Source: Octopus bimaculoides (lineage: Eukaryota). Taken from it: a stretch of 64,000 nucleotides of DNA. Of this stretch, positions 21,940 through 57,475 are shown piece after piece (positions within the stretch are counted from its first letter, which is position 1; each line of letters starts with the position of its first letter). A model generated the notes under the pieces. It saw only the letters and a program-made list of their open reading frames with translations, was not told the DNA's origin and did no database searches. A program made the position numbers and the translations under genes. The stretch is from NCBI RefSeq assembly GCF_001194135.2, contig NC_068981.1, forward strand, positions 44,126,735 to 44,190,734, in the 5' to 3' direction.

Positions 21940-22262
21940 TTTCAATACGGAGATATTTATAAAACAAAGCATTCAGTACCGCTGTGTTATGCCAGCAGTT
22001 GTATTGCTATTCTGCCACACTCGCGTGACATGGCTTGTAAACGGGTACAACTTTTATACTCATATCCATGAGTATTTCAGTCGTTCAAATCTTTCAAACG
22101 TTGTATACATTTGTAAAATTCCACTTTCTCCAAACGAAAATGTCATACATATACGTAAAACTTGCCAGATCATATAAACAATCAATGATTTTTATAAAGA
22201 TATAAAATACATATATTTTGTTTTCATTTCATTGATTGTCATTGTATCGATCATTTCGTGTC

Positions 22263-22950
22263 NNNNNNNNNNNNNNNNNNNNNNNNNNNNNNNNNNNNNN
22301 NNNNNNNNNNNNNNNNNNNNNNNNNNNNNNNNNNNNNNNNNNNNNNNNNNNNNNNNNNNNNNNNNNNNNNNNNNNNNNNNNNNNNNNNNNNNNNNNNNNN
22401 NNNNNNNNNNNNNNNNNNNNNNNNNNNNNNNNNNNNNNNNNNNNNNNNNNNNNNNNNNNNNNNNNNNNNNNNNNNNNNNNNNNNNNNNNNNNNNNNNNNN
22501 NNNNNNNNNNNNNNNNNNNNNNNNNNNNNNNNNNNNNNNNNNNNNNNNNNNNNNNNNNNNNNNNNNNNNNNNNNNNNNNNNNNNNNNNNNNNNNNNNNNN
22601 NNNNNNNNNNNNNNNNNNNNNNNNNNNNNNNNNNNNNNNNNNNNNNNNNNNNNNNNNNNNNNNNNNNNNNNNNNNNNNNNNNNNNNNNNNNNNNNNNNNN
22701 NNNNNNNNNNNNNNNNNNNNNNNNNNNNNNNNNNNNNNNNNNNNNNNNNNNNNNNNNNNNNNNNNNNNNNNNNNNNNNNNNNNNNNNNNNNNNNNNNNNN
22801 NNNNNNNNNNNNNNNNNNNNNNNNNNNNNNNNNNNNNNNNNNNNNNNNNNNNNNNNNNNNNNNNNNNNNNNNNNNNNNNNNNNNNNNNNNNNNNNNNNNN
22901 NNNNNNNNNNNNNNNNNNNNNNNNNNNNNNNNNNNNNNNNNNNNNNNNAC
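22263..22950. other. Assembly gap (one of 12 N-runs: 4541-5391, 12375-12528, 14324-14333, 20371-20380, 22263-22950, 23712-23810, 29648-29861, 31304-31450, 33043-33104, 36598-36923, 38321-38834, 49328-49963)
   Basis: Runs of N, most flanked by (TA)n/(GT)n/(GA)n; short-read draft assembly. Confidence 0.95.
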
Positions 22951-23530
22951 ACTACATTCAAACATGTGCACAGACATATAATCAGAATAGCTGGGTGAGG
23001 TTTGTTTTCCATGGGTTCGCAGGTGAGATTTGAGGCCAGCCAAGGACAGACATGGTCTGTCACAGACTGTGCACACAAAAAGGTCCTTGTCATTCACCTT
23101 CTCAGTCTTCACCTTTTTCCTTAAATGTCTCTTGAGCCCTGCTTGCATCATCCTGGCCTCTTCAAATGCTTTCACTCCACTCCACACCCTTGTTCGCCAT
23201 CCAACTCGATCTGAAGCGAGGACTTCTATATCTTTTGGAGCCATTCCAATTGACTTCATAGCAGTCCTTATGCCATCCTTAAACCTTTTTTTAGGTTTAT
23301 GCCGATAACGTTTCCCCTCTGCAAGCTCACCATAAATAGATAGATATACGAGTCTAATGCGCATCTATATTAAACACAGTGATCGATTCGATCATAGCTG
23401 CTTCAGCTCAGAATGGTGTTATAATGTTCATCTAGTTGGGTTGCATCTATCATTGCAGGCCGTGTCACTTCAACCGCCTGGTGTAGAGAAAGATGTAATG
23501 TGTTCTCATTGGGATGATGTTCTGGGTAGG
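22951..23530 (-). mobile_element. RTE-clade LINE 3' relic with C2H2 zinc finger
   Basis: IYGELAEGKR..KPKKRFKD...SDRVGWR...G...FE..R...CTVCDRPCLSLAGLKSHLRTH; runs into the gap. Confidence 0.85.
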
Positions 23531-25248: not shown

Positions 25249-26911
25249 ATTACATATTAGAATATTTCTTTCTTATTGTAAATCTTTTGACAAAGTATTA
25301 TGAATATCCTGACTTCAAATTTTTTGTTGCTATTCTCGTATCTTTCCCGAAAGACATATTTGGCTCTTAAATTTGAAGCAGTTTACAAAGCATGATGCCA
25401 CAGTATTGACGCTGACATAATTGCATACGCTGTCGTAAATATAGTAACAAATGACACGATTTCAAAACGTGTAAGTATACTTTCAATTGGAATGGTCTTT
25501 TATTGCTTGATGCCTTAACAAAAATGACGGTAGCAACATGTAAAAATTATACTTTAAAAAAGTGTAAGAATTAAAACTCATGCTTTAATAATGTATATGA
25601 TTTACATTATTAACGTTATTCAGTTGAAACGTTGTGTTAACAACAAACAAGATGAGTACAAATATCCGTCAAATGTGACCGATGTAAATAATGTAATGTG
25701 AGGGTGATGTTATCTTAAAGTTACCTAATTTATTTATACAATCAAAGGTTTATATTTAATTTGATATATAGAGATTACATATATAGAGAAAAGAGAAATG
25801 TTATTTAAAATATTAAATAAATTAAATTCTGATTAGAATTTAAAAATTCAATATTTAATAAAATGTACATGCAAGAAAAAAAGTGTAGATAACAACTGCT
25901 GTAAATGAGAACGTGGGGGACATTTTCGCTCTCGCACCTGAAAAATACAAAGGAAGAGTAAAATTGAATGTAAATAATTATAGAAATGCGTATTTTAAAA
26001 CAAAAGTGAGCCTCGCTTACTCATTTATCACATAATTCATGCAAAATTGTTGAAGTGAAAGTAACTGAAAATGAAATTATCGTTACTGAAATAATGATAT
26101 TTATACAATTAAATGACAACTCCCGAGTTTAATGTTGTAACCAAATACACAGGTTGGATTTGTCTTTATATCCTGAGTAATACAACATATAGGAACGAGA
26201 GATTTAACAATGTGTACTTCAATTTGTTGTACGTATATTATGAGAAAAGATTTCATTTCTTAACTTTGTAGGAAGAGAATATTAGACAACATAATGTACA
26301 AACATTATAACATAATTCATTTGATCAAATGTATTGATTTTTACATTTATCATTGCTTGTACATGTCGAGGAATTTGTTAAACAATTTTGTATTTAAGTG
26401 TAAACAAAATGTCGAAAAGTATTTTATGAGAAGTTCAGTCAAAATTTAAAATCAAGAATACCTTACACTTTTGGAATATGACATAGGAATAGATGACAAA
26501 ATGTAGAAGTAAATAAGAATGAAAAACGCCAGTCCTGACGAAATTTAAAGGATTTTACCAATATATCTATTGTTGTCTTCTATAAGTTTGATACCTAAAG
26601 ATTTTAATTTAGTGATCAGAAAATATGCTTCCGTTGTGTTTGCAGTCAAATAAATTATGTATTTTTTAGTGATAAAATGATTCTACCGGTGTACTAAATA
26701 TCAATTAAATGTGCGATTATAAAATACGACCGAACTATATATTATAGTTTGTCTACGATTTATGAGGTGGATTATTTTGTCTCCATGCGAAAAAATATGC
26801 AATAATGAAAATGTAATCAAAATGTCCGTGCCTCACAAATATATTATTTTTTACATTTTGTATAAAAACATCAACCTCACGCAGAAGAAAAAAGGTTTCA
26901 CACAAATGCAA

Positions 26912-26984
26912 CTAACCACTCGTAGGATCCGGATTGCTTTCAAGATCATGCTTGTCTAAGCTCTGAGATTTGATGTTACAGAAC
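26912..26984 (-). CDS. Gene 1 exon 13, probable last coding exon, FCNIKSQSLDKHDLESNPDPTSG*
   Basis: Acceptor gatttttgtatttcag; in-frame TAG at 26912-26914; a GTTAGT donor at 26916 overlaps the stop, so an alternative 3' end is possible. Confidence 0.7.
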
Positions 26985-28027
26985 CTGAAATACAAAAATC
27001 ATGAATATATAAATATATAGTTGAAATTTATCGAAAAACAAAGACGAAGACAGGTGTATGAACAATAAGTAGGTGTATTAGTTTGATGTTCGGGGAAAGG
27101 AAATCCATTTACATATCTGTGTATTTATGTAACACGAATAAGGAACAATTATTTTACATTTTGATAATTCAAATATAAAATAGATAGTTAAACTCACTTG
27201 TGCTCGTCAGAGGTCATTTTCTTATTGTTGGCCAAACATTTCAGCACATATTGCTGAAAATCTTCAATCACAAAATTGAAAGATCTCAAACTTGCATAAG
27301 AAACAAGAAATGAAGGAAACGTAATATTTTAGCTAATCACGAGAGAAAAAGATGTCTGGATTTATGTTTGAAAACTTTGGATAAACAATATTTTATAAGC
27401 ACAAAAATAAAGCATGAGATGTGGCAACAACATTTATTGTAATGTAATGATTTTAAAATAGGGATCTGACAGATATTTATTAGTTACATTAAGATATAGA
27501 TGTATACTTACAAACGCCGGTCTCCTAGGAGAACAACAGTGATGTCATTCTTTGTGACCTTCATACTAAAATGGAAAGTTTGGAAATAACGCTGTTATTC
27601 GTCTTTATTGGAACAAAATGCAATGAGCATCGAAGTATAATTTTTAATTACTGCGCCTTATAAGGCAGTGTATTCATGATCTCATATTCAAATTAAAATA
27701 ATGATAATAGATTGAAATGATTTTTTCTGTATATATTTGCATATGTTAGTTTGTCTGTGTGTGAGAGTGAGAGATATAGACAGACATACAGAAACGTGCG
27801 CACAAAGTCAGTTCTGCTGATTTGTATGATATCCTTATGGAACAGTAAATGCGTAGTAAAGGAACTTTCACTAAAACCAGCTGGATCAACAATTACAATT
27901 CTTTGTTTTTTTATGTTTTACTTTATTTAATGTAAACGAATGAGGAAATGACACAGACAATACATTATTATATACATGATATATGTTATAAGATGTCATA
28001 CATTCATACACACACACACACACACAC

Positions 28028-40575: not shown

Positions 40576-43500
40576 CAGGTATATAAATACATGTATACAT
40601 TCTGCTTTCACTCTAAATACAGAATTCTATTGCGTGAGGATATTCGTCTTACATATTTTATTTAGAATTGAATTTCTCCATCAATTCTATATGTATTTTT
40701 ATTATTGTTTTCTAGCAAATAATGTTTTTATACTGTTTGAAATTCAAAAAGACCTTGTGCTATCTGGTTACTTAACAATATCGTCTTGGTGTATTTCTCA
40801 AATTTCTGTATGGAAATTTAACGATTTACATAACGTAGGCTTTCTCTACTGTAATTAATCTCGTATCACAATTTTCTCGAGTAAATATATTCATTTTATT
40901 CCTTCGATTAAAACACGACATCAATAGGACTTTTTAACACTGAATCCTGAGGTGTTTAAGTATTCATTGTCAAAAACGTAAACGCGCATATTTTGATGAT
41001 TACATGCGAATATATAATAAGAATTGAATCTACTTACGGTTCATCCCAAACTTTTTCCATAGAGTCCATAATGATCATATGAGAATAGGCCAGTTTTTTC
41101 TCGAAATCTTCAATGTCCGAGCACATTTCCCAGCTGAAATATATGAATGTTATAATGAATTACTAGGTGGGACGTTTAATAATTTATTATAAGTTAGTGT
41201 CATAAGTATGTGTATCAAAGAGAGAAACTGGTAACGACCCGCTAGGTTTCGGTTCTTCAAAGTTTTTAAGGCACCGAAAAGCATAGTACAGCTGTGTTCA
41301 TAGTTACACTGATTCATCTCTAGAACATGTTGTTTAATTTCCTCAATTCAAGAGGAACAACTAATCTTTAACAATTGCACTAAAATCCCATGTCTCTTGT
41401 CAATTAGGAATATTTAAATGAGCAAATATCAAATATTTTGTCTCTGATAATAATATCATTCCCTCAATTAATGAAAGACATTTGGAGCTTAGTACAAAGT
41501 GTGCTGGGAGAGACTTTGAGTATTGTCTGCTAATCTGAAAAAAACAAAACCTCTTTAATAAGATCTCCGAATGTCAATCAAGAGATTCACTCTAAAAATT
41601 CTTTCATTTATTCTTCCATCAAATCGAGGTTAGATTCCATTTTGCAGTGATATTCTTCTTCACATTCCTGATTTTTGCATGTTATCGCATGAAGCTGGAC
41701 AATTCATAAAAATCACCCTGTCTTGTTATCTGTTATAATCTCTTACGGTAACCAAACTACCGAAAGGTTTAGTGTTTATTTTGAGATACATAAAAGTTTT
41801 CTTGATTAAAAGCTAGTGAACTTAAGACAAATGCAAATTTTTCTTTAAATATAAATGATGATTTCATATATCTGACAAACCTCCAATATAACAGCCTCAT
41901 ATTTGAAACACATCAACATATGATGCATTTCCCTGACCAAAGTACTGCTTGGTAATCCTACAGCTATCTTTTTATAGATGCAACATGTCTACTAATGTCT
42001 TGTTTCTATTAGTTATTGAAAGTACAATCCTATATACTATGAACTATCGTAAAATATACCACAATAAAGTTATCTATGAATCTGCCTGATATCTTAAACT
42101 TTTTTCAACAAAATATGTCAATTATGTCGAACAACTACCACTATAAAGATCTCTCCGAAGTTTATAATTCAGTTTTAAATATTATATGCAGTAGGATCAG
42201 AAATGTTTCTGAGCAAATCTAATCTAATGAAAATACAAATAATTCTGTTATTTTCAAATATATTTGTTTCTAAATTAGCTCAAAGTTGCAGGGAAACCAT
42301 AATTTGGTCTGTACACAACAAAACAAAAAATGAAGCAATATTAATCAAGTTTAATCAATTAATTAATAAGACAATGGTAATAATCTAATATACTGATGTC
42401 TATTGTGCCAAGATCCTCGATGAAATTTCTCTACAATATCACTACATTAGGTTTTTAAATATGTTTTAACTTTCCAATAAGAAGATTGTCAAATTCCATT
42501 GTACAGACAACCGATTCAGTTCTGAATATATTGGGTGAATCTGCAAATGCGAGAAAGCTCAAAATTTATCACGATGAGTTTTATATGCACATGCATGTGT
42601 GTGTTTGTTTGAAAGTGACATTTTCCTACTCCTTAAGTAAACAAAAACATACCTCATAAAGAAGTTTTCCCAAGCATGCTCCCTTGTCTTGTATTTCATG
42701 AGAAGTAATTCAGCATCCTGTTCCTTAGCAGAAAACCTAGAAAGAAAATAGTGAGAATAGAAATTGTGAAAAGGATGTGATGAGAAATTGAATTCCATAG
42801 AAACATATAATATATAGAGATATTTTAGAGAAATAGAAATATTAAAAAAAGAAAATATTCCTAAAAAATTCAAGTAAGTGTGTGTGTGGTGTTGGGGGGG
42901 GGGTTAGATTTATTTAAGATTAATAACAAAGGAGTTTCGTAATGTGTTTACATAAGAAAAACTTTTCATCTTTAGTGTTAACCAAATATCAATTCATTCT
43001 CATTATATTGTAGCTTTCTTTCAAACATAACCAACAAATTTCAATATTGTATCTGTAAGCGGAGGAAGATAGGATTTTCCAAGAGATTGATTGATCAAAA
43101 TTGTTTCTTTGGAGGTGCCAATTTTTTTCAGATAGACCTGTGCTATTCTCTTTTCTAGACTCTCTAATGGGAAATTTATGATTATTAATTCTTGATTTAA
43201 TAGGTTTCGTGAAACCAACGTATATGTATTTAGAGGTATTATGATTAATAATAATTGCTTGTATACTACTTCTTTCATTTTGCAATTTCTGTTTATTTCA
43301 CAAGTATCTGGTTCTCTACAATTACAATATAAATTATTGGGTGGTACTATGGTGTCATGTCTATATTTATTAGTGATAATGGAGTTTTGCTTATTAACAC
43401 AATATCAGTTGTTAGTTATACGATTATTGGAGTTGCTAGGTATATTTAATGATGTTTTTGTTATTATAGAATAGGTCCAATTTCTTATTGTTAAAAGAAG

Positions 43501-44828
43501 AGTTTATCCTAAAAAGATTTGGGGAGACTGAAAATCCAAATCTGATTTTTTTATTATTAAATATTATTTGCATATTTGGAGTTTTTACATTTTTATTAAT
43601 TGTATTTCTAATGGATGTAATACAATTAGATTTTAGATGTTTGGTAAAAGGTATTATGATTCAAGTAGTGTTATTGCTGTTTCTTTTATTGAAGTGATGG
43701 GTTGTTGGGGGGGGGGGGTCAGCTATTCTCACACGAGGTATTGGTCTTTTTTTGCTATTTTATTCCTATCTATATTAATATGACTTCTGTGGTTATATTA
43801 TTGGAGGGATTAGGTGAGATGAGATTATTTTTATTTTTTATGCTTATTGATTATTATTCTTATTGTTATCTATAATAAAGCATTTATAGTGTTTGCTGTC
43901 AGTATTCTTGGGTTTATTAATATTAGTATTAGTGCAGTTAGTAAGGCGTAAATTGCTAAAAATTATATTATTGCTTCTTTTAGTAAATGTTTGGTTATTG
44001 TGTTCATATTGATTAAGTTTATTAGTATGTTAATTGTAGTTCTGGATTCCATGTCTATTGCTAAAGTTATGTTGATGACTATTATTGACAGTTTTTTAAT
44101 ATATTTGTCGGGCTGTACTAATTGATAGATGACTTAGGTTCACTAATATTATCTATGTGGTTCATATCAAGATATATTTTGTTATTATTAGTATTCCTGT
44201 CGTCGTTTATATTGTACTTAATTTCATATTTATATCCTGCTTTCTTAAGTGCTAGGTTATAGTAGTCTTTTGAAATTTAAAAAATATTTCATTTTTTAAA
44301 AATATTTCTATTTATTTAAAATATCTCTATATATTATCTCTTTCTATTGAATTCAATTACTCACCACTTCCTCTTCACATCTAATCAATACTATAGATTA
44401 TACTTGCCCTATATTGCCTAACAAATGCTGGGTATAACGATTCTCTGGTTTACACCCCCGTTCACTTTAAACGCCAAGAGGTTAGCCAAGCTCTTCTTTC
44501 AAATAGTAGATTCTAACTTCTCACGTCAACATAAATACCGATCAATCTTTAATACATCTACCCTTAGTTTATCCTACTTCTCTCCGCCTGATATGTAACT
44601 AAGGCGAATGTTGATACTAATAGCACCACCACTAATACTAATATTGATAGCTATAATATGGAAACCATCACCACCACCACCAGACAATGGGTGAATACGA
44701 ATGGATCAAAAGACAATCAATAAAAAAATACATATAATGTATGACGTATGTCAGTATAAACAAACAATGACTGCTTACGTGTAAGAAAGGTATAGGATGA
44801 TTAGGAAACATATGATGTACCCTCTCAT
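26912..44828 (-). CDS. Gene 1 (whole span): 13-exon secreted precursor protein, 232 aa, family not recognised
   Basis: Hand-spliced join of 44779-44828, 42653-42736, 41038-41133, 37952-38089, 36506-36538, 35804-35833, 33737-33775, 32941-32976, 30898-30921, 28877-28903, 27512-27524, 27198-27253, 26912-26984 = 699 nt, ATG to TAG, no internal stop, every intron GT..AG. Protein: MRGYIICFLIILYLSYTFSAKEQDAELLLMKYKTREHAWENFFMSWEMCSDIEDFEKKLAYSHMIIMDSMEKVWDEPYIKRLLLFPIYHFKQYEKKAFKNAMGCFQKIFEDPFAIPKGKEFKRPKRSVRSKRAIARLGKATLDIVSGAFSGFLGNIASEGLLRFLGIGDNADSSAKEVRNVNDWKERPAFQYVLKCLANNKKMTSDEHKFCNIKSQSLDKHDLESNPDPTSG*. Confidence 0.8.
27198..27253 (-). CDS. Gene 1 exon 12 (56 nt, phase 0->2) QYVLKCLANNKKMTSDEH
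   Basis: Acceptor gaagattttcag, donor aa|gtgagt; phase-2 reading hits TGA, phase 0 is open. Confidence 0.8.
27512..27524 (-). CDS. Gene 1 exon 11, microexon (13 nt, phase 2->0) RPAF
   Basis: Acceptor ctgttgttctcctag, donor ttt|gtaagt; supplies exactly the phase shift needed to keep exon 12 open. Confidence 0.75.
28330..28425 (+). ncRNA. Hammerhead-ribozyme-like motif (type I, Penelope-type minimal stem III)
   Basis: CTGATGA 28340-46; stem II ATAGC/GCTAT (28347-51/28401-05) extended by GCGG/CCGC; GAAAC 28406-10; palindromic ATAT loop; GTA triplet 28415-17; stem I imperfect. Confidence 0.6.
28540..28720 (-). mobile_element. SINE family B, degenerate copy
   Basis: Reverse-complement similarity to 46235-46400. 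Confidence 0.5.
28877..28903 (-). CDS. Gene 1 exon 10, microexon (27 nt) VRNVNDWK
   Basis: Acceptor atttcttttcatttctag, donor ga|gtaagt. Confidence 0.8.
30649..30880 (+). mobile_element. SINE family A
   Basis: ggtggcgagctggcagaaacg...ttctgagttcaaattc...catcctttcggggtc. Confidence 0.85.
30898..30921 (-). CDS. Gene 1 exon 9, microexon (24 nt) NADSSAK
   Basis: Acceptor cattttcctttacag, donor ga|gtaagt. Confidence 0.8.
31750..32900 (-). mobile_element. Highly degraded LINE relic (apurinic endonuclease region, CR1/L2-like)
   Basis: Broken frames give CPKMTCHRSSSARSTID, ISPSNHHALL (cf. SDH) and RNKPWLKK (cf. KPW). Confidence 0.35.
32941..32976 (-). CDS. Gene 1 exon 8, microexon (36 nt) SEGLLRFLGIG
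   Basis: Acceptor caatatttttcag, donor ga|gtaagt. Confidence 0.85.
33600..33700. repeat. Partial palindromic repeat with 17-bp inverted repeat
   Basis: gacctgttcactgacaa (33644-60) / ttgtcagtgaacaggtt (33682-98). Confidence 0.7.
33737..33775 (-). CDS. Gene 1 exon 7, microexon (39 nt) VSGAFSGFLGNI
   Basis: Acceptor ttattctttcattttag, donor gc|gtaagt. Confidence 0.85.
34700..35585 (+). mobile_element. RTE-clade LINE 3' relic
   Basis: VEGTILKVVDEFV*LGSTLS..LDDEISFRL...TKIAVYRTCVL..LY...FHQRCLKHIL...QMLYGELVNGKR...KPRLRFKD. Confidence 0.88.
35804..35833 (-). CDS. Gene 1 exon 6, microexon (30 nt) ARLGKATLD
   Basis: Acceptor ttgttttcctttacag, donor at|gtaagt. Confidence 0.85.
36506..36538 (-). 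CDS. Gene 1 exon 5, microexon (33 nt) PKRSVRSKRA carrying the furin-type sites
   Basis: Acceptor cgtttgtttacag, donor at|gtgagt. Confidence 0.8.
37458..37672 (+). mobile_element. Internally deleted mariner relic
   Basis: Degenerate TIRs (caggcggatggtgaaaagtc / gaacatttcagtacactct), TA flanks, transposase C-terminus LEKLKDRCNKCMSPGGEFVG*. Confidence 0.6.
37952..38089 (-). CDS. Gene 1 exon 4 (138 nt, phase 2-2) YIKRLLLFPIYHFKQYEKKAFKNAMGCFQKIFEDPFAIPKGKEFK
   Basis: Acceptor ccttattcacag, donor cg|gtaagt; only the phase-2 frame is open; lies within ORF 37948..38223. Confidence 0.85.
39250..40370 (-). mobile_element. RTE-clade LINE relic, endonuclease fused to RT by internal deletion
   Basis: KRRTALV..IGVVALLGTRL..FLWLGKP..EFAIRKDLV..ISERL (endonuclease), then GRGTVDMIFNLRKLQ...LGVPEKIL...FTVSNGTKHDCVVA (RT). 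Confidence 0.8.
41038..41133 (-). CDS. Gene 1 exon 3 (96 nt, phase 2-2) WEMCSDIEDFEKKLAYSHMIIMDSMEKVWDE
   Basis: Acceptor catatatttcag, donor cc|gtaagt, open frame. Confidence 0.85.
41500..42560 (-). mobile_element. Possible Penelope-like RT relic
   Basis: Weak motifs RFIDNFIV (cf. RYIDDIF) and IMVSLQL*ANL (cf. MGSPLAP.LANL). Confidence 0.3.
42653..42736 (-). CDS. Gene 1 exon 2 (84 nt, phase 2-2) FSAKEQDAELLLMKYKTREHAWENFFM
   Basis: Acceptor ctattttctttctag, donor ag|gtatgt, open in the frame continuing exon 1. Confidence 0.85.
42900..44500 (-). mobile_element. Penelope-like element relic (RT thumb, linker, GIY-YIG endonuclease)
   Basis: YNLALKKAGY; CNCREPDTCEINRNCKMKEVVYK; YIYVGFTKPIKSRINNHK...NSTGLSE..W.L...ISWKIL...CWLCLKE (ORFs 42989..43285, 43021..43278). 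Confidence 0.8.
44779..44828 (-). CDS. Gene 1 coding exon 1 (signal peptide MRGYIICFLIILYLSY, 50 nt)
   Basis: caaaATG context, hydrophobic core, donor ac|gtaagc; possible acceptor ctccaaag 4 nt upstream of the ATG. Confidence 0.8.
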
Positions 44829-45050: not shown

Positions 45051-45123
<73 letters not shown>

Positions 45124-48095
45124 ACACACACACAACGGGCTTTTTTTAGTTTCCGTCTACCAAATCCACCCACAAGGATTTGGTCGGCCCGAGGCAATGG
45201 TAGAAGACACTTGCCTAAGGTGTATATATATATAAGTCCATCGTCATTTTTCTAATACTTATTTTGTTATTAATCGTTTCTTACAAAATGTCTTGCAAAT
45301 AATGAACATACTTTAAAATATATATAGTAAAATCCCATATATAGTAAATGTCCCATGAAGTAAGCATATTTATTTTTTAAGTTTTCGTTCTCTAATTTAG
45401 GCCACTACTTAATACAGACACACACAGAAATATCTATAGATATAAAAAAATGAGTTTGAACAATTTGTGGCTCTTCTTGGATGCGTATTACTAGTCTTGT
45501 TTAATTTTCCTATTAAATTCATGACCTGATAGTAAACTGCAGTTTCTACGGGATTATTCGTAGCGCACATGGGTGATTGAGGAATAATGCGAGGTCTTGC
45601 TCCTCTATATGGATTCGGAAGTGCTGGTTTTTGTATATTAGCTGTTCGATGGCGCTTGGTGAAAGTAAAATTAAACTGCATAATATGAATAGAAAATAGA
45701 ATGCAATAAACAGGTTAGTTCATGTGAGGTTGTATAGGATGTAAAAAAAGAGTCCCTCCGCAGAAAATATATTATTGCAGAAGGAATATTTATAAGATCG
45801 TATAAAGCTATGAAAGAATATACTAGACCTTTCAAGACTGAAAAAAAAAAAAAAAATTATAAAAGGTGTTGAAAGCGTCGTCCTTCATTTTCACCTTATT
45901 TTACTGTCATGTGAACACTAGTCTGATTTCCGTAGGACGTAGAAAATCCACTGCGGAGAGAGGTTTTGAACATGTATGACGTCAGAGTGTAAAAGGTAGA
46001 GTGACCGAGAAATAAAGCGAATGGAGAAGATTTCGAAATACAAGTGAAGGATTGGAATAATGAAACTGTACGCATTTAAGACAAAGACATGTATGTATAT
46101 GTGCCTGCATGAGTTGGATTCGTTATTTTTCTCTTTGCCTGCGTGAGATGGGAGTATTGAGGTTTGGGAGATATATTATGGTAGTGGAATAGTTTTTAAC
46201 TGATATTTCTAAATTTCGGTGCAAAAAGAAATTTGCTTGTTTCAGTCATCTGATTGCGGACACGCTGCGGCACCGCCTTTAGTCGAGCAAATCGACCCCA
46301 GGACTTATTCTTTGTAAGCCTAGTACTTATTCTATCGAATCGCTAAGTTACAAGGATGTAAACAGAAAAGCATCAGTTGTCAAGCGATAGTGGAATGACG
46401 AATGCAGACACACAAACATGCACCCCCCCCCACACACACAACGGGCTTTTTTTAGTTTCCGTCTACCAAATCCACCCACAAGGATTTGGTTGGCCCGAGG
46501 CAATGGTAGAAGACACTTGCCTAAGGTGTATATATATATATATAAGTCCATCGTCATTTTTCTAATACTCATTTAGTTATTAATCGTTTCTTACAAAATT
46601 TGTTGCAAATAATGGACATACTTTAAAATCTATATAGTAAATGTCCCATATATAGTAAATGTCCCATGAAGTAAGCATATTTATTTTTTAAGTTTTCGTT
46701 CTCTAATTTAGGACACTACTGAGTACAGACACAAACACATACACACATACACACACACAGACATATCTATAGATATAAAAAGATGAGGTTCAACGATGTG
46801 TGGCTCTTTTTGGATGCGTATTACTAGACCTGTTTAGTTTTCCTATTAAATTCACGACGTTTCTCAGGTTTACATGACTTGAGTATGTTAAAGTATATAT
46901 AACTGTATAACCATGAAATGCCTCTGCTTAAATCCTTTACTTGTAACATTCCAACTGCCTAAAATATTTTTTAATTCCTTTTTTACATTTTGTTAAATTC
47001 TTATATTACTATTTTCTCTTCAAAATTATATTTTCGACACACACCGTGCTCTCTACATATTCTGATCGAATGTTTCCTGTATTAACATAAGACTCTTCAC
47101 GACAATATCATCTCCATTATATATACATGTACATAAGATTCATGAGAGGATAAAGCGCGAAGAGTTTGACAAGATGTGATGTAATAACCAAAGGATAAGA
47201 GCAGCAGTTATGCGACAGTAACAAATAATAATGAAATAACTGTAAAAGCTGTACACAGGTAACTATACACCGACTAAAAGAATAAGAAAAGTAATAGACT
47301 TACGTTTAAGGAGTAATTTTCACCAATGTAAAATTAACGAGACTGATGTGAGAAAATGAATGCAAAGTGAAAGTAAAATTAAACTGCGTAATATGAATAG
47401 AAAATAGAATGCAATAAACAGGTTAGTTCATGTGAGGTTGTATAGGTTGTAAAAAAAGAGTCCCTCCGCAGAAAGTATATTATTGCAGAATGAATATGTA
47501 TAAGATGGTATAAAGCTACAATAGAATATATTAGACCTTACACACAAACACACACACACGCACACATACACACACATACACACACACACACACACACACC
47601 CACACACCCACACACATATATATATATATATACATGCAACAGGCTTCTTTCAATTTCCGTCTACCAAATCCACCCACAAGGATTTGGTCGGCCCGAGGCA
47701 ATGGTAGTAGACACTTGCCTGAGGTGTGTATATATATATATAAATATATATATGTATATATATATATATGTTTCTAATATATATATGTTTCTAATACTTA
47801 TTTAGTTATCAATCGTTTCTTACAAAATTTGTTGCAAATAATGAACATACTTTAAAATATATATAGTAAAAGTCACATATATAGTAAATGTCCCATGAAG
47901 TAAGCATATTTATTTTTTAAATGTTCGTTCTCTAATTTAGGCCACTACTGAATAGGATGCAATAAACAGGTTAGTTCATGTGAGGTTGTATAGGTTTAAA
48001 AAAAGCGTCTCTCCGCAGAATATATATTATTACAGAATGAATATTTATAAGATGGTATAAAGCTACAAAAGAATATATTAGACCTTACAAGACTT
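44985..48095. repeat. Local mosaic duplication, blocks A and B each in 3 copies
   Basis: A: 44985-45530, 46355-46860, 47640-47950; B: 45661-45840, 47370-47540, 47955-48095. Confidence 0.9.
46235..46420 (+). mobile_element. SINE family B
   Basis: ttcagtcatctgattgcgg...caccgcctttagtcgagcaaatcgaccccaggacttattctttgtaagcctagtacttattc. Confidence 0.8.
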
Positions 48096-51205: not shown

Positions 51206-52495
51206 CAGGCTGCGGTGAATAAATTGTCGTCTAAAACACGCAAAAATGAAATACTGTTATCTCATTTTAACATATATATTTACCAAAATTACATTAAAAA
51301 ATCTTGAAATAGTAAAGAATAAATTTATTCAATAAAATCGTCACTGGCTTCAACTACGGTTTTAGACGACTCAGGAATCTCCTGCAACTCTTCTGGACAT
51401 CTTCTAGTTAAAATTGGTGAATGCTACCATAATCCTTGCATTCAGTTCATCTTCGGTGTTACGAGGAGTTTCGTTGGTCACTCGCACAACTGCACGCCAT
51501 ACATAATAATCAAGGGGGTTGCTGTCTGGGAAGTATTTTCGTCCGATATTAGAGGTGATGTGGTCGCTGAAATTGTCTGACAGCCATGACTGGGTTCTCC
51601 TGCTTGTGTAGCATCGTGCAGGGTCCTGTGGCCAGCCAGAATCTTCCAGCAGCCACCCTTTCGACTCAGGGCTGCACTGCCTCCCCCAGGCACTTGATGT
51701 AGGCCTCTGTGTTGAGTCTGTAGCCGTGTGAAAAGATGAATGGAGTCATAACTTTGGAACCACTAGTGATCACTTCAAACAAAATGATGTTGACTGGATG
51801 TTTGATTATTATCAATGTCGGTACATGTTTGGAGGACACAGCAAGTAAACGGTGTTTCTGTGTGTTCACCATCTGATCCTGGCAGAAATGTTACTTGTCA
51901 CAGAAAAATCAAAACCGTATGGAGGGGATGAGTGTTTTTGTTCTCAATGTTCGTAACCATCTAGTCCTTGAATGCTTGGGATAATAATTGGCTCTTTCTT
52001 ATCTTGTATGAGAAATACTGAATATCTTCATGCACTACCTGATTGATAAAAAAACTCAGACACTCCCATGTCCTTGGTGATGGCCCTGATGGACTTGAAG
52101 GTATCGTTGTCAATCATGGCATGGATCTCACCAACAAAATCAGGACTTCTTTTCTTAACAGAATGATTAGAGTGAATTTTCCGAGCTACCGTACCTTCGT
52201 AATCCCTATTAGAATTAAACTCATCCACCATTTTTCGAATCCTCTGTAATGCCCTGAGATCTACACCCAAACACTCTGAAATATTCCTATTCCAGCTTCC
52301 GGCTTGAATGCCAAGCAGAACAGCATGTCGTTTCCAAATTTCTGGCAGCGTAAATTGCGTGATGGTGCAATTGATTTCACAGAATGTACCCAACTGACCC
52401 TAGTATATTGTGTAGTCGACAAATCAAAAAAACAAACAATGGGCTTGCGCGAAATTAAAAATATAAAATGGTGACAATTTAACCATTGCCTTCTG
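51206..52495 (-). mobile_element. Tc1/mariner DD37D (maT-type) transposon, near full length, transposase disrupted
   Basis: TIRs caggctgcggtgaataaattgtcg / cagaaggcaatggttaaattgtca; WKRHAVLLGI..SECLGV..R; KHPVNIILFEVITS...PFIFSHGYRLNTEAYIKCL; HTSRRTQSWLSDNF.DH.T; frameshifts. Confidence 0.9.

Positions 52496-55503: not shown

Positions 55504-57475
<1,972 letters not shown>

Follow-up and report, generated by a model that had tools for sequence, protein, structure and literature searches.

The stretch of DNA analysed here (the window) comprises 64,000 nucleotides (nt) of Octopus bimaculoides contig NC_068981.1 (positions 44,126,735 to 44,190,734 of the forward strand, assembly GCF_001194135.2), in which a reading made from the letters alone, referred to below as the sequence-only reading, had proposed a hidden, unrecognised 13-exon gene for a secreted precursor of 232 amino acids (aa). 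A protein search with this 232-aa product retrieved P0001, the 'uncharacterized protein LOC106876345 [Octopus bimaculoides]' (XP_014780332.2, UniProt A0A0L8GK47), and also matched paralogues in O. bimaculoides and O. sinensis. The minus strand of the window encodes P0001 residue for residue (284/284) as a chain of 14 exons with GT-AG introns and a coding sequence of 855 nt, and the locus corresponds to CM046601.1:44.15-44.17 Mb (GCA_001194135.2), where the letters of the window were found to be identical, gaps included. LOC106876345 is a real, annotated and uncharacterised gene, and the observation made in the sequence-only reading was largely right; as the gene was already present in the NCBI annotation, nothing hidden or invisible to annotation was uncovered. 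The exons, in window coordinates and in the order of transcription, are as follows.

44779-44828, minus strand: exon 1, 50 nt, with caaaATG and MRGYIICFLIILYLSYT, which resembles a signal peptide; phase 2 at its end, followed by the donor GTAAGC.
42653-42736, minus strand: exon 2, 84 nt, phase 2-2, with the conserved HAWENFFM; donor GTATGT.
41038-41133, minus strand: exon 3, 96 nt, phase 2-2, with the invariant C49.
37952-38089, minus strand: exon 4, 138 nt, phase 2-2, with FPIYHFK, C104 and DPFA.
36506-36538, minus strand: micro-exon 5, 33 nt, encoding PKRSVRSKRA; the RSKR codons (R129-R132) at 36522-36511 form the proposed proprotein-convertase site.
35804-35833, minus strand: micro-exon 6, 30 nt, encoding ARLGKATLD.
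33737-33775, minus strand: micro-exon 7, 39 nt, encoding VSGAFSGFLGNI.
32941-32976, minus strand: micro-exon 8, 36 nt, encoding SEGLLRFLGIG, with the core GTTTCYTGGGAA in common with exon 7.
30898-30921, minus strand: micro-exon 9, 24 nt (30 nt in O. sinensis), encoding NADSSAK.
28877-28903, minus strand: micro-exon 10, 27 nt, encoding VRNVNDWK with the near-invariant W184.
27512-27565, minus strand: exon 11, 54 nt, phase 2-2, encoding MKVTKNDITVVLLGDRR.
27198-27290, minus strand: exon 12, 93 nt, phase 2-2, encoding LRSFNFVIEDFQQYVLKCLANNKKMTSDEH with C222.
26917-26984, minus strand: exon 13, 68 nt, phase 2 to 1, with C237 and the weak donor G|GTTAGT.
25855-25937, minus strand: coding part of exon 14, 83 nt including TAA, encoding ARAKMSPTFSFTAVVIYTFFLACTFY, a hydrophobic C-terminal tail that resembles a glycosylphosphatidylinositol (GPI) signal.

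Eleven consecutive internal exons (2-12) are all of phase 2-2, and introns 1-12 are all of phase 2. Exons of 39 nt or less account for 189 of the 855 coding nt (22%) and symmetric exons of any size for 654 (76%), four of the latter being 84-138 nt long. The 138-nt form of exon 4 agrees with the annotated protein and with all paralogues; a strong internal acceptor at 38001, which would give a 50-nt exon 4, was rejected as it breaks the frame and leads to a TAG at the exon 5/6 junction. A plus-strand reading of the coordinates was likewise rejected, there being no caaaATG at 26912.

The chain described in the sequence-only reading does exist on this strand, from the ATG at 44828 to a TAG at 26914-26912, and consists of exons of 50/84/96/138/33/30/39/36/24/27/13/56/73 nt that sum to 699 nt (232 aa), with GT-AG sites at every intron and with its 12 donors divided as stated into eight GTAAGT, two GTGAGT, one GTAAGC and one GTATGT. 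The symmetric micro-exon run to which it had drawn attention, with exons 2-10 all in phase 2-2, is present, and is strengthened by the corrected exons, which make exons 2-12 uniformly phase 2-2. Ten of the 13 exons are exact, and the two proteins are identical up to residue 185 (exons 1-10) and diverge afterwards. According to the annotated protein, exon 11 is not the 13-nt exon 27524-27512 but a 54-nt exon (27565-27512), exon 12 is not the 56-nt exon starting at 27253 but a 93-nt exon (27290-27198), and exon 13 does not end the gene at the TAG but measures 68 nt and is spliced at G|GTTAGT to exon 14.

In O. sinensis, the locus of LOC115220522 (L002) follows the window colinearly through exons and introns alike, with an identity of 82-87%, and its exons of 50/84/96/138/33/30/39/36/30/27/54/93/68/83 nt differ in size at exon 9 only. 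Between the coding sequences of the two species there is one indel, an in-frame one of 6 nt, against 8.8 expected if gaps opened as often as in the introns, at 10.3 per kb (P = 0.0015); no premature stop is found despite 132 interspecies substitutions, whereas only 1.1% of neutral simulations stay open (P = 0.011); and 51 of the 52 splice dinucleotides are unchanged. These comparisons show that selection keeps the open reading frame (ORF) and the splice sites intact. The ratio of non-synonymous to synonymous substitution (dN/dS) was 0.65 overall and 0.78 in the micro-exon part, values that would fit a surface or secreted protein in fast evolution. A duplicate that is decaying or without function, its frame open by chance, could likewise show a dN/dS of 0.65 and exons whose conservation in the two species does not exceed that of the introns, and the gene does lie on another chromosome than the remaining O. 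bimaculoides family members. Such a duplicate would, however, be expected neither to lack stops and frame-breaking indels at the above probabilities nor to retain nearly all of its splice dinucleotides, and the family motifs are kept down to paralogues that are only 35% identical, so that we regard this explanation as extremely improbable.

A strict micro-exon pattern, with at least seven pyrimidines in ten, YAG, an open exon whose length is a multiple of three between 21 and 42 nt, and GTRAGT, was sought on both strands of the whole window. The arrangement goes beyond chance: of the eight matches obtained, six are exons 5-10, which follow one another in order over 7.7 kb and share one open frame, and the other approximately 120 kb scanned hold the remaining two. 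Five assembly gaps fall within the gene span, all of them intronic (introns 3, 4, 7, 8 and 9), and no exon is touched by them, the nearest ones lying some 60 nt upstream of the exon 5 and exon 8 acceptors. Simple repeats abut several gaps, namely (GTAT)n (29887-29971) at gap 29648-29861, (TA)n (33105-33140) at gap 33043-33104 and CA/TG-type repeats (36924-37000) at gap 36598-36923. The suggestion that further micro-exons could lie in these gaps found no echo in the O. sinensis orthologue, where a scan of locus L002, which has no runs of N, revealed no more micro-exon candidates with strong splice signals in the introns. As this gap-free orthologue has the same 14 exons, nothing suggests a constitutive exon hidden in a gap of the window, while a lineage-specific or rarely used exon may lie within one.

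The 3' end of the gene was considered separately. The donor of exon 13, GTTAGT, is the only one here that is neither GTRAGY nor GTATGT, and its read-through leads at once to GGT TAG, the stop chosen in the sequence-only reading, ending the protein without the tail. The stop directly after this donor is also kept in O. sinensis, the paralogue P0003 likewise uses a GTTAGT donor, and the O. vulgaris orthologue model CAI9733804 (P0020) ends in ...PESG, without the tail. The last intron of the O. sinensis gene has AA at its acceptor (L002 45727-45728) as opposed to AG in O. bimaculoides (window 25939-25938); the annotated O. sinensis protein requires this non-canonical AA site, and splicing to the AG that lies one base farther downstream would end the protein in ...ES-V-R-stop. 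The O. sinensis/O. vulgaris lineage may have lost the anchor exon, or the difference may be an assembly error. Together, the conserved stop, the P0003 donor, the tail-less O. vulgaris model and the O. sinensis AA acceptor make a tail-less soluble isoform plausible, which would arise by read-through at the weak exon-13 donor; the TAG of the sequence-only reading may therefore be a genuine alternative end, though the exons 11 and 12 that precede it in that reading are incorrect.

The same observations, along with an open chain and GT-AG sites throughout, could be taken to favour the soluble 232-aa secreted precursor itself as the main product, with a 13-nt exon 11, a short exon 12, the TAG at 26912 and the architecture of a strict micro-exon gene (MEG). 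The 13-nt and 56-nt exons, however, drop 31 conserved residues, DMKVTKNDITVVLLGDRRFLRSFNFVIEDFQ, and put ERPAF in their place; the dropped stretch contains D201, R203, F204 and L205, positions that hardly vary down to paralogues of 35% identity, and makes up half of the confidently predicted helix 191-223. Moreover, O. sinensis lacks the AG acceptor on which the 13-nt exon depends, every paralogue examined retains the 54-nt and 93-nt exons, and the micro-exon share of the coding sequence (22%) and the lack of homology to MEG proteins do not fit a strict MEG. This precursor is thus a very improbable main product.

When 1.84 billion representative proteins were searched exhaustively with a hidden Markov model (HMM) and 5.8 billion proteins with a profile, relatives of LOC106876345 were found in O. 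bimaculoides, O. sinensis and O. vulgaris only; the term 'cephalopod-specific' had accordingly been too broad for what is, in these searches, a family of the genus Octopus. The sole non-family match, the 2219-aa EGF/discoidin-repeat protein P0014, was spread over 10 repeats and was judged spurious. Six family members compared with Pfam gave nothing above the cut-offs and sub-threshold noise only (e.g. MbeD_MobD and Syntaxin_2), and a PDB profile search gave no match at E ≤ 10. A full-text literature search retrieved no paper on the gene or protein identifiers, and nothing relevant on micro-exon genes in cephalopods. The family, as distinct from the annotated gene, seems to be undescribed in the literature.

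Orthologue and paralogues have kept the layout of 14 exons in which introns 1-12 are all of phase 2. P0003 has exons of 53/84/96/150/33/30/39/36/30/27/54/93/47/83 nt and the divergent paralogue P0008, in a 12-exon model, of 53/81/96/129/27/39/36/27/54/93/53/5 nt, and their internal exons through exon 12 (exon 10 in P0008) are all of phase 2-2. The shared phase-2 scaffold therefore carries six micro-exons in P0003 (33/30/39/36/30/27) or four in P0008 (27/39/36/27), equivalents of micro-exons 6 and 9 being absent from the divergent paralogue. Exons 6, 7 and 8 of LOC106876345 have a common core, TCYTGGSAA, which encodes LG in the same frame and hints at micro-exon duplication as the way in which the cassette grew; the match between exons 7 and 8 was reached by 2 of 300 shuffles, a modest support. 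Downstream of the O. sinensis orthologue, L002 47871-47903 encodes RSKKNIASIKK, like exons 5 and 6 joined without an intron, and may be a processed fragment of a family member.

The family genes occur in small clusters, LOC115220522 and LOC115220626 of O. sinensis adjoining each other tail-to-tail. LOC106876345 is located on the 199.9-Mb record CM046601.1 and LOC106881475 and LOC106881480 on a 58.2-Mb record, whereas the O. sinensis orthologue adjoins its paralogues on one chromosome; as the O. bimaculoides members are split over records and those of O. sinensis are together, either a translocation or an assembly difference is indicated.

Only residues 1-20 and 266-284, the latter at the extreme C-terminus, are strongly hydrophobic in the 284-aa protein. 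The N-terminus, MRGYIICFLIILYLSYTFSA, has a Kyte-Doolittle hydropathy of about 1.9-2.0 and is signal-peptide-like. Four cysteines (C49, C104, C222 and C237) and R129, K131 and R132 are invariant in six close paralogues, and an R-x-K/R-R or RRKRR site is also present in P0015 and P0017. Furin-type substrates carry an R-x-K/R-R motif in an exposed region of a protein of the secretory pathway; in line with this, the site of LOC106876345 lies in a loop with a predicted local distance difference test score (pLDDT) below 50, and cleavage itself is a prediction. The 38 residues after RSKR, AIARLGKATLDIVSGAFSGFLGNIASEGLLRFLGIGDN, are encoded by micro-exons 5-9, include seven glycines and have a net charge of 0 and a moderate hydrophobicity. 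Small residues, a short polar spacer and a hydrophobic C-terminal stretch form the usual layout of a GPI-attachment signal, and the C-terminus of LOC106876345 is arranged in this way, with S257-G258-A259 (S-G-A), the spacer RAKMSPT and then FSFTAVVIYTFFLACTFY-COOH; G258 and A259 are invariant in six close paralogues, and the tails of P0015 and P0017 are similar. Of the secreted, furin-processed product that had been proposed, the signal-peptide-like N-terminus and the invariant R-x-K-R could be upheld, but not the plain term 'secreted', as the full model ends in the hydrophobic tail.

AlphaFold modelling from 15 sequences resulted in a single all-alpha domain (pLDDT 73, predicted template modelling score (pTM) 0.71), in which the loop 117-131 leading to RSKR is disordered, while the micro-exon helix 139-155 and the long helix 191-223 are confident. 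With the six close paralogues only, the pLDDT was 36 and the model unusable. Foldseek detected nothing significant for the 15-sequence model in PDB (best E = 0.53) or among the viral models of BFVD (best E = 0.25).

For paralogues, skipping of single symmetric exons is recorded in the annotation of all three species. The 39-nt exon 7 (13 aa) is skipped in the annotated isoform X2 of O. sinensis LOC115220522 and in the O. vulgaris model CAI9733803, the 30-nt exon 6 (10 aa) in isoforms X3/X4 of O. bimaculoides LOC106881480 and the 96-nt exon 3 (32 aa) in isoform X3 of LOC106881475; in addition, single-residue differences between paralogue isoforms are found where exon 9 begins. Whenever a cassette exon is skipped, gained or lost, the encoded segment would change in length and composition while the frame is kept.

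Taken together, we consider it probable that LOC106876345, a real protein-coding gene of a small family found in Octopus only, encodes a cleaved, membrane-anchored, helical protein with a skippable micro-exon cassette. According to the mechanism that we propose, the N-terminal hydrophobic stretch would act as a signal peptide for entry into the secretory pathway, and the product would fold as one all-alpha domain, to be cut by a furin-type convertase in the disordered loop at RSKR132. The C-terminal half would then remain on the cell surface, through either a GPI anchor or its own hydrophobic tail, and its new N-terminus would be a Gly-rich, moderately hydrophobic, uncharged helix derived from the symmetric micro-exon cassette 5-10, a segment open to variation by splicing and by gene duplication. 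Candidate biological roles are, for example, surface recognition and interaction with membranes.

Several points weigh against this interpretation. Signal peptide, convertase cleavage and GPI anchoring have been read from sequence features only, LOC106876345 itself has a single annotated isoform and the isoforms of the paralogues are annotation models. Exon identity is not above intron identity, which together with the dN/dS of 0.65 shows weak constraint. The AlphaFold model is based on 15 sequences of one genus, and the five models span pLDDT values of 40-73. Lastly, the distant paralogue P0013 has a transmembrane segment followed by a short basic tail, YHYRRK, so that the type of anchor may differ within the family.

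The cluster of basic sites, KRPKRSVRSKR, is also what a neuropeptide or antimicrobial precursor might contain, in which cleavage after an N-terminal pro-region would free an amphipathic peptide encoded by the micro-exons, and the helical 38-residue segment that comes next, with its RLGK and FLG motifs, evolves fast (dN/dS 0.78 in that part). Across the family, however, a single basic site is conserved and no second conserved cleavage site for release was found; the segment has no net charge and, for the greater part of its length, a low hydrophobic moment, and it runs on into the conserved Cys-bearing C-terminal region that ends in the predicted membrane anchor. As AlphaFold moreover packs both halves into one domain (pTM 0.71), a peptide precursor appears quite improbable.

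Class I viral fusion glycoproteins are cleaved at a basic site, by which a hydrophobic N-terminus is exposed on the membrane-anchored subunit, and the octopus protein resembles them in having a basic site followed by a Gly-rich hydrophobic segment on a subunit that is predicted to be anchored C-terminally. The order of elements, RSKR, AIARLGKATLDIVSGAFSGFLGNIASEGLLRFLGIG (7 Gly in 38 residues, uncharged, Kyte-Doolittle 0.3-0.9), a long helix, a Cys-x14-Cys loop and a C-terminal anchor, would suit a membrane-active, fusogen-like surface protein in which cleavage at RxKR exposes such an N-terminus, tuned by micro-exon splicing. This likeness is one of composition only. Neither the viral models nor PDB gave a fold match, the protein is small, one-tenth to one-third the size of those glycoproteins, and its many introns (14 exons, all introns but the last in phase 2) carry no sign of viral origin; a fusogen-like function is therefore unlikely. 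The boldest combination of the above features, an Octopus-restricted family with an apparently new all-alpha fold and a cleavage-exposed, fusion-peptide-like, Gly-rich N-terminus on a GPI-anchored subunit, this membrane-active or recognition segment being varied combinatorially by micro-exon skipping, and with an anchored/soluble switch at the exon-13 donor, would amount to a convergent MEG-like diversification system in a mollusc, and we consider it unlikely as a whole.

Glypicans are furin-processed, GPI-anchored proteins with a helical core and 14 cysteines. The LOC106876345 product is similar in its putative signal peptide, its internal R-x-K/R-R site, its putative C-terminal GPI-type signal and its predicted helical core; it differs by its much smaller size, by four cysteines instead of 14 and by the absence of any significant Foldseek match in PDB or any Pfam match.

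The likeness to MEGs proposed in the sequence-only reading was weighed against the published descriptions. In MEGs, which are known from platyhelminths only, most of the coding region consists of very small symmetric exons, and a signal peptide and splice-made variants are typical (PMC4350168, PMC10526429); the exons measure 6-81 bp, mostly 15 bp (PMC10526429), and this type of gene architecture appears restricted to flatworms (PMC4350168). LOC106876345 is like the Schistosoma MEGs in its signal-peptide-like N-terminus, its very short symmetric exons with long introns between them, the protein variants that lack single exons (here in paralogue annotations), its restriction to one lineage and its fast evolution. 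It is unlike them in showing no sequence similarity, in belonging to a mollusc and not a flatworm, in having 22% of the coding sequence instead of most of it in exons of 39 nt or less, in the length of these exons (24-39 nt as opposed to mostly 15 nt) and in the position of the cassette inside a conserved helical domain with four conserved cysteines. Owing to this low micro-exon share and the lack of homology to MEG proteins, LOC106876345 is no MEG, although it works like one in part, and the evidence partly supports a resemblance that is real, incomplete and convergent. The closest analogue would be a composite gene of the SmVAL-6 type, in which ordinary exons encode a conserved domain and one part consists of very small symmetric exons (PMC4350168). 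SmVAL-6 differs in its venom-allergen-like domain and is thought to have come from recombination with a MEG (PMC4350168), whereas the octopus gene has phase 2-2 throughout exons 2-12, large or small, and a domain for which no relatives are known.

What appears undescribed is thus an Octopus-only family with no recognisable domain or fold, with twelve consecutive phase-2 introns and with a micro-exon cassette that encodes exactly the segment after a conserved protease site. With skip isoforms annotated in three species, a convergent cephalopod case would provide a model for the origin of symmetric micro-exons and for the diversification of surface proteins, and the family would give a concrete entry to one of the many octopus orphan gene families.

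Besides LOC106876345, no second family member was found anywhere in the window by tblastn with all paralogues. A candidate for a paralogue tail exon at 7438-7497 (minus strand), VVNTFQFAVLLFYTLFVTCS, with 41-53% identity to the C-terminal tail of the family, was dismissed as a chance hydrophobic match, since it has no acceptor, no following stop and an internal direct repeat. The window is AT-rich, with 12 runs of N, and contains ORF fragments resembling remnants of transposable elements at 22192-23364 (minus strand), 55814-56188 (plus strand), 52028-52393 (minus strand) and 39413-39815 (minus strand, inside intron 3). A Pfam scan of the flanking and intronic ORFs gave one weak C2H2 zinc-finger match only; the remaining fragments, without a Pfam match, were judged reverse-transcriptase- or transposase-like by eye only. 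Close to the gene, a TATA-like TATTTATAAAAATA is located about 140 nt upstream of the ATG, preceded by a long run of (TG)n (window 45060-45128) at a distance of about 230-300 nt from the ATG, and an AATAAA is present at 25734, beyond the coding part of exon 14.

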